The position numbers and the translations under genes were made by a program. Below, piece by piece: positions 8 to 58,473 of a stretch of 64,000 nt of DNA (its first letter is position 1; each line of letters opens with the position of its first letter). Source of the stretch: Podarcis cretensis (lineage: Eukaryota); assembly GCA_951804945.1 (NCBI GenBank), contig OX638149.1, forward strand, positions 113,894,001 through 113,958,000. The letters are read 5' to 3'. The notes below the pieces were generated by a model. The model was not told where the DNA came from. It worked only from the letters and a program-made list of their open reading frames with translations, and did not search any database.

Positions 8-91
8 CTCGATGATCTTCTCCTTCTTTTTCTGATCTGCCTTTTTGTTACCCGCCCCCGATGCTGCCGGTGCCTGTTTTTTGGGGGGCAT
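8..91 (-). CDS. ZC3H15: ZC3H15 (DFRP1/LEREPO4, zinc finger CCCH-type 15) coding exon 1
   Basis: Minus strand ATG at 91 gives [28 protein letters not shown] followed by the donor GTGAGAC (7-1). This matches the vertebrate ZC3H15 N-terminus (human [25 protein letters not shown]|DKTFG). 84 nt, ends in phase 0; the rest of the gene is left of the window. Confidence 0.93.
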
Positions 92-830
92 TTCGGAAGG
101 GGGGGGGAGGAGGAAGAGGAGGGAAGAGAACGGGTGGGGGGAAGGGAAGGAGACGCCGCCGAGGCCCAGAAGCAAAAGCGACCCCCACGCCTTTGCTTAA
201 CCGCCAAGCGGAGGGGAGGGGAGGGGGGCTCGGCTGGGGGGTGGTGGTGGTGGCGGCGGCGGGCAAGCTGTGAGGGGAGACTGATGGAATCCACCACCGG
301 CAGAACGAGGGCTTCGCGTTTGCGACAAGCCGTCAGTGACGGAAGCGGCAGAGCATTATGGGAACGGGAAGAGCCGAGGAGAAGCCGAACGTGACGAGGG
401 AGAGCGCGCACGCGCGCAAGAGCCTTTCCCTCCCCGGCCCGCCGCCGCTCTCGACGCTCATCGCCTCGCTCCCACAGTGCATTGCGAAACCCTGACAGGA
501 CAAGGCAAAGGGCGGACCCTCCCGCGGCGTGCGATTGCGTCACGGGGGGCGGGGCTTAGGTTTCCGTTGAGGGTTCGGTTTCGCCGGGTAAAGGGGAGGG
601 GCAAAGGTTCGGAGTGCTTCTCCTCAGAGGCTGTTAGTCTGAGGTGGTCAACTGCTTGCAACGTTCGTCGCGCCTCTGCCCCTCGCTTGTGTTAAGGGCA
701 GCAAAATATCTGGAAGCCTTCTTTATTAAAAGTATGACTTCGGCCCTCCTAAAGCGTTCTGAAAACGTCCTGAGGCAAGATGAGGCGGCTGCTTCAGGCG
801 GCAGGGCTCGCAGGGGCAGCAGATCCAGGC
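92..830 (-). promoter_or_regulatory. CpG island: 5'UTR and promoter of ZC3H15
   Basis: Very GC/CpG-rich relative to the rest of the window. GC box GGGGCGGGGC (~546-555), ETS-like CGGAAG (~340), NRF1-like GCGCGCACGCGC (~403-414), no obvious TATA. Lies directly upstream of the ZC3H15 ATG. Confidence 0.8.
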
Positions 831-58400: not shown

Positions 58401-58473
58401 GAGTACCTGGCCTCCTTGCACAATCCCAGGCTGAGTTGTGTTTGCCTTTGGAGCACCCACAAGGAGGAACATC
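16275..58473 (-). CDS. ITGAV: Integrin alpha-V, exons 2-20 only (beta-propeller, thigh, genu, first part of calf-1); exon 1 outside window, exons 21-30 not found
   Basis: 19 exons, all with AG/GT boundaries and mutually compatible phases, join into one open frame highly similar to vertebrate ITGAV. FG-GAP repeats, DxD/NxDG Ca-binding loops and the genu CGEDNVC are present. Confidence 0.95.
16464..18088 (+). mobile_element. Degenerate hAT-Charlie/Buster DNA transposon with transposase C-terminal remnant
   Basis: TIRs CAGTGTTTCTCAACCT / AGGTTGGGAACCACTG; 8-bp TSD CTCTGGAT/CTCTAGAT. 17439-17678 translates [48 protein letters not shown]...QAQPPH* (hAT dimerisation domain, one internal stop). Confidence 0.88.
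16680..17165 (-). mobile_element. L2-clade LINE 3' fragment with microsatellite tail ((TAA)n on plus strand), nested in the Charlie element
   Basis: [13 protein letters not shown]...[14 protein letters not shown]...[10 protein letters not shown]; same family as 18990-22867. Confidence 0.88.
18990..22867 (+). mobile_element. Near full-length L2-clade LINE (APE endonuclease + RT), inactivated and internally chimeric
   Basis: APE motifs CNARS, VTETW, GDFN, SDH and RT motifs [23 protein letters not shown]. Stops at ~19517, ~20657, ~20757 and 22593; (ATT)n tail 22840-22867. The 5' boundary is uncertain (T-rich tract from ~18770). Confidence 0.92.
23835..23902 (-). CDS. ITGAV: ITGAV exon 19
   Basis: tag|[22 protein letters not shown](S)|gtatga; 68 nt; genu. 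Confidence 0.95.
24298..24435 (-). CDS. ITGAV: ITGAV exon 18
   Basis: tag|[46 protein letters not shown]|gtacag; 138 nt. Confidence 0.95.
24803..24957 (-). CDS. ITGAV: ITGAV exon 17
   Basis: cag|(T)[51 protein letters not shown]|gtaagc; 155 nt. Confidence 0.95.
25451..25493. repeat. (TA)n microsatellite
   Basis: Perfect TA run; forms the tail of the L1 fragment. Confidence 0.9.
25452..26020 (-). mobile_element. L1-clade LINE 3' fragment with (TA)n tail
   Basis: ORF 25675-25953 [28 protein letters not shown]...EDWKMFIEY; CAGAGGAAC on both flanks (probable TSD). Confidence 0.82.
26828..26886 (-). CDS. ITGAV: ITGAV exon 16
   Basis: cag|[19 protein letters not shown]|gtaagt; 59 nt. Confidence 0.93.
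28025..28132 (-). CDS. ITGAV: ITGAV exon 15
   Basis: aag|[35 protein letters not shown](C)|gtaaga; 108 nt; start of thigh domain. Confidence 0.93.
28906..28951 (-). CDS. ITGAV: ITGAV exon 14
   Basis: cag|(D)[14 protein letters not shown](R)|gtaagt; 46 nt. Confidence 0.93.
29778..29969 (-). CDS. ITGAV: ITGAV exon 13
   Basis: tag|(D)[63 protein letters not shown]|gtgatc; 192 nt. Confidence 0.95.
30332..30692 (-). mobile_element. Sauria SINE, older subfamily
   Basis: Reverse complement of the Sauria body; TSD CTAATGGACTA at 30321-30331 and 30693-30703. Confidence 0.88.
31138..31346 (-). CDS. ITGAV: ITGAV exon 12
   Basis: cag|[69 protein letters not shown]|gtaaag; 209 nt. Confidence 0.95.
32729..33574 (-). 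mobile_element. Penelope-like retroelement 3' part (GIY-YIG endonuclease + pLTR)
   Basis: Open frame ...CNKPRCQLC...[35 protein letters not shown]...HF...[11 protein letters not shown]...GLN (GIY-YIG with CCHH motif). TCACAGGACAA flanks both ends (32718-32728, 33582-33592). Confidence 0.9.
32787..32824 (-). ncRNA. Minimal type I hammerhead ribozyme in Penelope pLTR
   Basis: Minus strand GTAT-CTGAAGA-A-GTGTGC-AT-GCACAC-GAAA-GC-TC^ATAC: stem I, CUGANGA core, stem II, GAAA, vestigial stem III and UH cleavage site. Confidence 0.8.
33811..33863 (-). CDS. ITGAV: ITGAV exon 11
   Basis: cag|[17 protein letters not shown](D)|gtaagt; 53 nt. Confidence 0.94.
34379..34734 (+). mobile_element. Full-length Sauria SINE
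   Basis: GGGACGCGGGTGGCGCTGTGGG start, ACCTTT tail, TSD TTACTTTGTGAATT on both sides; ends ~80 bp from ITGAV exon 10. Confidence 0.93.
34817..34873 (-). CDS. ITGAV: ITGAV exon 10
   Basis: cag|[19 protein letters not shown]|gtatgg; 57 nt. Confidence 0.93.
34974..35017 (-). CDS. ITGAV: ITGAV exon 9
   Basis: cag|(D)[14 protein letters not shown]|gtaagg; 44 nt. Confidence 0.93.
35349..35393 (-). CDS. ITGAV: ITGAV exon 8
   Basis: cag|(G)[14 protein letters not shown]|gtatgg; 45 nt. Confidence 0.93.
35721..35919. mobile_element. hAT MITE
   Basis: CAAAGCTTTCCAAAC...GTTTGGAAAGCTCTG TIRs; reverse-oriented relative of 62275-62471. Confidence 0.75.
36212..36337 (-). CDS. ITGAV: ITGAV exon 7
   Basis: cag|(G)[42 protein letters not shown]|gtaggt; 126 nt. 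Confidence 0.95.
37480..37525 (-). CDS. ITGAV: ITGAV exon 6
   Basis: cag|[16 protein letters not shown]|gtgaga; 46 nt. Confidence 0.95.
38627..38688 (-). CDS. ITGAV: ITGAV exon 5
   Basis: cag|(T)[20 protein letters not shown]|gtaggg; 62 nt. Confidence 0.95.
41719..41833 (-). CDS. ITGAV: ITGAV exon 4
   Basis: cag|[38 protein letters not shown]|gtatgt; 115 nt. Confidence 0.95.
43145..43236 (-). CDS. ITGAV: ITGAV exon 3
   Basis: tag|(G)[30 protein letters not shown]|gtaagc; 92 nt. Confidence 0.95.
43295..43940 (+). mobile_element. L2-like LINE 3' end interrupted by a MITE
   Basis: ACCAGGGCCAGGGCCTTTTCAGTG...TGGAATGCTCTG..., ending GTTAGCCGCCCTGAG...GGGTATAAA plus ATT tail. Confidence 0.65.
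43407..43496. mobile_element. 90-bp palindromic hAT MITE
   Basis: CATAGCTGTCAAC...TTGACAGCTATG TIRs with 8-bp TSD GGCCAGGG; second copy at 49203-49292. Confidence 0.82.
44972..45103 (-). mobile_element. Mini Penelope insertion (pLTR end plus its inverted copy)
   Basis: Matches the 32729-32778 pLTR sequence; perfect 48-bp inverted repeat; 12-bp TSD AATGGACAAGGT at 44960-44971 and 45104-45115. Confidence 0.88.
45405..45760 (-). mobile_element. Sauria SINE, young subfamily
   Basis: Reverse-complement copy; TSD CACCAATACTGTTTA at 45390-45404 and 45757-45771. Confidence 0.93.
49203..49292. mobile_element. 90-bp palindromic hAT MITE (second copy, opposite orientation)
   Basis: Reverse-complement match to 43407-43496. 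Confidence 0.78.
50452..50651 (+). mobile_element. L2 extreme 3' end with (TTA)n tail
   Basis: [14 protein letters not shown] and GGAAGCCACCTAGAGTGGCTGGGGAACCCAG match the 3' end of the 18990-22867 element. Confidence 0.8.
51488..51543. repeat. ~11-bp tandem repeat (CTCAAGTCATA-like) x5
   Basis: ctcaagtcata ctcaagcaata ctcaagtcata ctcaagcata ctcaagtcata ct. Confidence 0.85.
52650..52972 (+). mobile_element. Sauria SINE
   Basis: A and B boxes and Sauria body, CCTTTACCT tail. Confidence 0.88.
53885..54545 (-). mobile_element. CR1 3' fragment interrupted by two adjacent hAT MITEs
   Basis: [29 protein letters not shown] (CR1 ORF2 C-terminus); the 3'UTR continues on the other side of the MITEs. 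Confidence 0.7.
54096..54362. mobile_element. Two tandem palindromic hAT-Charlie-type MITEs (GGACTACAAYTCCCATCATCCC family)
   Basis: CAGTGATGGCCTAACTT...AAGTTTGGCCATCACTG (54096-54231) followed by a second related copy. The family also occurs at ~5880-6165, 12550-12700, 38090-38210, 45250-45383, 54710-54838 and 56010-56330. Confidence 0.78.
58343..58473 (-). CDS. ITGAV: ITGAV exon 2
   Basis: cag|G ATG...[44 protein letters not shown]|gtaata; 131 nt. Confidence 0.95.

Follow-up and report, generated by a model that had tools for sequence, protein, structure and literature searches.

A 64,000-bp stretch of the Podarcis cretensis genome (GCA_951804945.1, contig OX638149.1, positions 113,894,001 to 113,958,000; hereafter, the window) contains exons 2 to 20 of the integrin alpha-V gene, ITGAV, followed on the same strand and without a gap by what appears to be the first exon of ZC3H15. 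ITGAV exons 21 to 30 are really missing from the window. This gene order is the reverse of the usual vertebrate order, and we tentatively read the window as crossing the join left by a recent segmental duplication in tandem; the duplicated unit would begin upstream of ZC3H15 and end in ITGAV intron 20. We place this reading just short of an even chance. It is the most economical account of the arrangement, but not a demonstrated one. Below, we describe the evidence for the two genes and for the junction, and then weigh the duplication against assembly error and other rearrangements.

The ITGAV portion consists of 19 exons on the minus strand, from position 58473 down to 16275, totaling 1894 nt, or one base plus 631 codons. 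These code for residues 51–682 of Podarcis muralis ITGAV (P0279), with no stop codons and no frameshifts. Reference proteins were obtained by searching one exon of the window against a representative library and then gathering the named ITGAV orthologues. The 19 exons were located by tblastn, with exons searched singly, and split codons were checked one at a time in a script that worked border by border. All 18 introns have a single GT...AG solution each with consistent phases, and the split codon at every exon border gives the same residue as in P0279. An earlier reading of the same DNA, made from its letters and open reading frames (ORFs) alone (the sequence-only reading), held that exons 2–20 are complete, in frame, and bounded by canonical splice sites, and this is borne out in full. 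The exons are listed here in the direction of the gene; borders of exons 3–19 come from the script, joined by Pfam matches for exons 12, 13, and 17.

58343–58473, minus strand: ITGAV exon 2, 131 nt, residues 51 (split codon) to 95 of P0279, AG acceptor at 58475–58474, GTAATA donor
43145–43236, minus strand: ITGAV exon 3
41719–41833, minus strand: ITGAV exon 4
38627–38688, minus strand: ITGAV exon 5
37480–37525, minus strand: ITGAV exon 6
36212–36337, minus strand: ITGAV exon 7
35349–35393, minus strand: ITGAV exon 8
34974–35017, minus strand: ITGAV exon 9
34817–34873, minus strand: ITGAV exon 10
33811–33863, minus strand: ITGAV exon 11
31138–31346, minus strand: ITGAV exon 12, FG-GAP repeat
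29778–29969, minus strand: ITGAV exon 13, FG-GAP repeat
28906–28951, minus strand: ITGAV exon 14
28025–28132, minus strand: ITGAV exon 15
26828–26886, minus strand: ITGAV exon 16
24803–24957, minus strand: ITGAV exon 17, Integrin_A_Ig_1 (thigh)
24298–24435, minus strand: ITGAV exon 18
23835–23902, minus strand: ITGAV exon 19
16275–16422, minus strand: ITGAV exon 20, the last ITGAV exon in the window, residues 633–682 of P0279, phase-0 end, strong GTAAGT donor

Comparison with human integrin chains identifies the gene as alpha-V: exon 20 matches human alpha-V most closely (E = 3.7e-20), followed by alpha-5 (E = 1e-11) and alpha-IIb (E = 5e-4). As a per-residue upper bound, identity is ~96–99% to ITGAV (whole models and isoforms) of Podarcis raffonei, P. 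lilfordi, P. muralis, and Lacerta agilis, 96% to Zootoca, ~90% to other squamates, and ~83–85% to birds and crocodilians. Exons 2–14 align to residues 51–457 of Podarcis ITGAV at about 99–100%. The FG-GAP matches in exons 12 and 13 mark the beta-propeller, and exon 20 spans positions 23–70 of the 145-position Integrin_A_Ig_2 (calf-1) profile in Pfam, equivalent to residues 610–662 of mature human alpha-V in solved structures. The window copy has residues 51–682 and the splice borders in common with lacertid ITGAV (P. muralis XP_028603799.1, P. raffonei, P. lilfordi, and Lacerta agilis), as well as the FG-GAP, Integrin_A_Ig_1, and Integrin_A_Ig_2 signatures.

Set against Podarcis ITGAV, the codons depart at three sites, all of them variable among lacertids. 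Within exons 2–20, only two residues differ from P. muralis ITGAV (S343 and F376), and both states are found in other lacertids; at two further variable sites, I274 and T513, the window has the P. muralis residues, which are not those of P. lilfordi. There are no private amino acid changes in the 631 codons. An old, decaying pseudogene copy is excluded, with private amino acid changes, stop codons, and splice defects all at zero. The sequence-only reading took the intact exons to mean that the copy is either very young or under constraint; the logic is correct, but the pattern would be no different were this the sole functional ITGAV. The absence of private changes therefore points to one of three states: a very young copy, a constrained copy, or simply a working gene. 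Among public proteins, one ITGAV model from Varanus komodoensis (KAF7239430.1; P0001, 734 aa) has no ITGAV sequence beyond exon 19 and runs on into something unrelated. A gene-prediction error is the probable cause, though this makes a further squamate ITGAV model cut short in that part of the gene.

The rest of the gene is not found. Full-length lacertid ITGAV is 1040 aa long, whereas the window does not encode residues 683–1040, which comprise the remainder of calf-1, calf-2, the transmembrane helix, and the GFFKR tail. Coding in the window ends at residue 682 and falls short of the complete integrin leg (thigh, calf-1, and calf-2). In tblastn searches with >100 vertebrate ITGAVs, including ~20 from squamates, no alignment in the window extended past residue ~684, and a permissive search with one ITGAV query (P0174; E = 10, word size 2) still gave nothing past that residue. 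We also searched all six-frame fragments of ≥8 aa with hidden Markov models (HMMs), using --max with filters off. The C-terminal profile (residues 683–1040, built from 19 vertebrate ITGAVs) gave a best E value of 4 over the whole window, which is noise, with matches scattered on both strands. In contrast, a control HMM of residues 40–682 recovered 19 of 19 exons; even one of only 15 aa was found, at E = 2.7e-4. With this positive control, the permissive tblastn and --max HMM searches exclude overlooked exons 21–30. The sequence-only reading had reported no such exons ahead of the ZC3H15-like exon and had proposed a tblastn check of positions 92–16274; these searches cover that interval along with the rest of the window and agree with it.

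The features between ITGAV exon 20 and the left edge of the window are, in the direction of the gene, as follows; two of them are copies of a short interspersed nuclear element (SINE).

15915–16274, minus strand: presumed stub of ITGAV intron 20, 360 bp directly after the exon 20 donor
15548–15914, plus strand: SINE copy B, young, few substitutions from SINE copy D, without target-site duplication, candidate recombinant junction
3180–15547, no strand assigned: repeat-rich interval of 12.4 kb, no recognizable exon or domain on either strand, base skew unlike that of ITGAV introns
2823–3179, plus strand: SINE copy A, young, 98% identical to copy D, without target-site duplication, second candidate recombinant SINE
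1–1000, no strand assigned: CpG island, observed/expected ratio up to 1.1, covering the ZC3H15-like exon 1 and its upstream flank
8–92, minus strand: coding part of the ZC3H15-like exon 1, ATG at 92–90, 28 codons, phase-0 end, GTGAGA donor at 7–2

The ZC3H15-like exon lies at the very end of this series. A pyrimidine-rich leader precedes its ATG, and the window ends 7 bp past the end of its coding part. We take the 28-codon peptide at 92–8 to be the N-terminus of ZC3H15/DFRP1. As a very short query, the 28-residue piece had no named match in the PDB, the protein collection, or the Atlas. A read-through ORF from another organism, on a 1.2-kb contig (P0343), has the same leader, ATG, peptide, and donor, and this conservation supports a conserved first exon. 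ZC3H15 would be expected to have an MPPKK... N-terminus encoded by a short first exon in a CpG-island promoter; this sequence and an island are present, and the exons for its CCCH zinc fingers and DFRP C-terminal domain would lie outside the window. The claim that a ZC3H15 promoter and exon 1 lie on the same strand as ITGAV stands as far as the exon, its donor, and the CpG island are concerned; the name of the gene is our own tentative assignment.

This exon is co-oriented with ITGAV and comes after ITGAV exon 20 in the direction of the gene, with no gap between them. In human and chicken, the order is ZC3H15, then ITGAV, then FAM171B. A zebrafish paper (PMC9221761) gives the position of conserved elements as upstream of itgav or downstream of zc3h15, which supports zc3h15 followed by itgav as the usual vertebrate order. 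A simple inversion is excluded on geometry, as both genes stay co-oriented. In a tandem duplication, the distal end of one unit is joined to the proximal end of the next in the same orientation, and the gap-free join in the window has this form. Altogether, co-orientation plus reversed gene order in gapless sequence matches what is predicted for a tandem-duplication junction. At such a junction, a partial ITGAV (exons 1–20) would be followed, in the direction of the gene, by the ZC3H15 promoter and exon 1, and a second ZC3H15 and a full ITGAV would lie outside the window.

The interval between the two genes offers some hints about where the join may be. A tRNA-derived SINE of ~355 bp is present in four full-length copies in the window, two within ITGAV introns and two (A and B) between exon 20 and the ZC3H15-like exon. 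Clear target-site duplications of 13–16 bp flank both intronic copies (2/2), whereas neither copy A nor copy B has them (0/2), and the flanks of A and B do not cross-match. Unequal recombination between dispersed copies is expected to leave a SINE flanked on its two sides by DNA from separate insertions, which makes copy B (15548–15914) the best junction candidate. In addition, most ITGAV introns in the window (16 of 18) fall below 3.1 kb, which favors a breakpoint near exon 20. These features hint that copy B, 360 bp past exon 20, is the junction and that copy A marks a possible second event. Under the duplication model, dispersed SINE copies would have recombined unequally to form the join, with copy B the likeliest site, and a further SINE-mediated event could have occurred at copy A (2823–3179).

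Base composition gives a weaker indication in the same region. On the gene strand, positions 3200–15500 have a TA skew of −0.057 and a GC skew of −0.052, versus values near zero in the ITGAV introns, a difference of 4–5 standard errors; this weakly suggests that most of the region is not ITGAV intron. As breakpoint locators, the CpG profile and base skew are weak hints only. The true breakpoint would lie somewhere within 3180–15547 or at its edges. Another gene in positions 92–16274 is excluded: ten ORFs there have no credible Pfam domain, and the sole match, to GABP-alpha, is sub-threshold (E = 0.067, 14 bits vs. a cutoff of 26).

Several points weigh against the duplication. No second copy of ITGAV or ZC3H15 is visible within the 64-kb window, which takes in just one side of each putative copy, and among public proteins of 0.55–1.75 times the query length, there is no truncated or fused lacertid ITGAV, although the species may be unannotated. 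The name ZC3H15 is a tentative assignment made from the N-terminal peptide. The usual gene order is drawn from zebrafish, human, and chicken. The contrast in target-site duplications compares two SINE copies with two (Fisher p about 0.17), and the skew of 3200–15500 may stem from its repeat content. The tandem duplication proposed by the sequence-only reading is upheld in part: the gapless, co-oriented, reversed order fits a junction, but the window has no second copy, and a contig mis-join would look the same. The truncation of the ITGAV copy is deduced from a 16.3-kb stretch that stops 7 bp past the end of the ZC3H15-like exon.

The mis-join is the alternative that we take most seriously, though we consider it unlikely. 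Here, a contig-internal mis-join, or a false duplication with a closed gap in which two haplotypes were placed head to tail, would have brought ITGAV intron 20 next to the region upstream of ZC3H15, and the true order would be single-copy ZC3H15, ITGAV, and FAM171B. Overlapping haplotigs placed in tandem give exactly this configuration, the exons match a normal, functional ITGAV as expected of the real gene, and the two young SINEs in the interval, up to 98% alike, could mislead an assembler. False assembly duplications of this kind, whether from haplotype retention or overlapping contig ends, likewise make a locus look tandemly repeated, its “extra” exons being intact. However, they normally flank a scaffold gap, whereas the 64 kb include not one N and not one masked letter, so the join is not a scaffold gap. 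Furthermore, the assembly passes through long microsatellites and through several SINEs of up to 98% identity, which suggests that it was built from long reads. The other SINEs are resolved with their target-site duplications intact, which points to reads far longer than the 360-bp repeat and makes a false join through it less likely.

It is also rather improbable, in our estimate, that ITGAV is whole, with ZC3H15 (entire, or a copy of its promoter and exon 1) sitting inside a very long intron 20 and exons 21–30 beyond the left edge. Transposition, dispersed duplication, or duplication followed by losses could each lead there. As the window ends 7 bp into the intron after the ZC3H15-like exon, the 3′ ITGAV exons could lie further left; the exon 20 donor is strong and intact, the lack of private changes is what a single functional gene would show, and two SINEs without target-site duplications bracketing a 12.4-kb segment fit more than one rearrangement. 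Yet this arrangement calls for at least two events, or for a mechanism rarer than tandem duplication. A nested same-strand gene with its own poly(A) site would also disturb transcription of an essential ITGAV, and a very long intron sits poorly with the short introns elsewhere in the window. Finally, a real rearrangement without duplication could have broken the only ITGAV gene. Reversed order alone speaks for this, and we regard it as very improbable: other lacertids have a full-length, 1040-aa ITGAV, the exons here show no decay, and alpha-V is essential in mice. On any of these readings, the case is one of common structural variation or of an assembly problem, and no new type of system is involved.

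The tandem duplication that we favor resembles known partial-gene tandem duplications, including those mediated by SINE/Alu elements. The likeness includes reversed order in the same orientation, a partial upstream gene, an intact promoter-proximal part, repeats without target-site duplications at the candidate junctions, and exon ends that are both phase 0. Such duplications can yield chimeric transcripts; in the present case, the second copies and any chimeric RNA are predicted. A literature search found no paper on such a duplication in lizards.

Other elements were found within the window. A long interspersed nuclear element (LINE) at 19520–22592 (plus strand), in ITGAV intron 19, has Exo_endo_phos_2 and RVT_1 domains in ORFs of 379 and 611 aa, as well as an internal tandem repeat of ~540 bp (20074–20611 vs. 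21239–21776, 88% identity); it was possibly active recently. A 189-aa ORF at 33008–33574 (minus strand), within another ITGAV intron, contains a GIY-YIG endonuclease domain, which is the hallmark of Penelope-like retroelements. The one Rfam hit in the window, a tRNA-Ala(TGC) at 24635–24706 (plus strand; 34 bits, also predicted by ARAGORN), lies outside 92–16274, antisense to ITGAV between exons 17 and 18; it may be either a genuine tRNA gene or the head of a SINE. Long (AAT)n/(ATT)n microsatellites at 16597–16734, 22671–22877, and 50549–50743 are attached to a second repeat family, with inverted copies at 16697–17168 and 22867–22394 that share 85% identity. Just upstream of the ZC3H15-like promoter, two ORF fragments at 2483–2833 (minus strand) and 1377–1598 (plus strand) resemble the 3′ end of a BovB-type LINE and the tail of L1 ORF2; neither has a significant Pfam match.

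If the duplication is real, the partial copy would have two potential outputs. Read-through past exon 20 adds seven codons (VSLVSTL) before a stop at 16253–16251, and ATTAAA/AATAAA poly(A) signals lie 0.9–1.2 kb downstream of exon 20, at 15337, 15290, and 15060. ITGAV exon 20 and ZC3H15 exon 1 share a phase-0 end, so splicing from the former to ZC3H15 exon 2 would stay in frame. A transcript of the partial copy would either read through to the poly(A) signals or be joined, still in frame, to ZC3H15 exon 2. If it stopped at exon 20, the protein would consist of a propeller, a thigh, and an incomplete calf-1; it would lack calf-2, any membrane anchor, and GFFKR. With exon 20 breaking off midway through calf-1, the partial copy probably lacks integrin function and is unlikely to yield a stable integrin subunit, and a functional secreted headpiece is also unlikely, since the break falls inside this Ig domain.

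A more ambitious version holds that the duplication is real, that it is very young or else lineage-fixed and constrained, and that the partial ITGAV is transcribed as an ITGAV–ZC3H15 fusion or a secreted alpha-V fragment; we consider this a long shot. If true, the fusion would be a signal-peptide-bearing alpha-V headpiece joined to ZC3H15, the secreted form would be polyadenylated in the intron stub, and a new chimeric or decoy gene would have been born by SINE-mediated recombination. Neither a real duplication nor an artefact would alter what is known of integrins or of duplication mechanisms. An artefact would flag an assembly error through which annotation would gain a spurious additional ZC3H15 and a spurious truncated integrin. 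A real duplication would be a clean squamate case of partial-gene tandem duplication, in which the repeat-mediated mechanism can be identified and a chimeric ITGAV–ZC3H15 transcript could form in frame, and it would be useful for studying the origin of new genes and structural polymorphisms in Podarcis.

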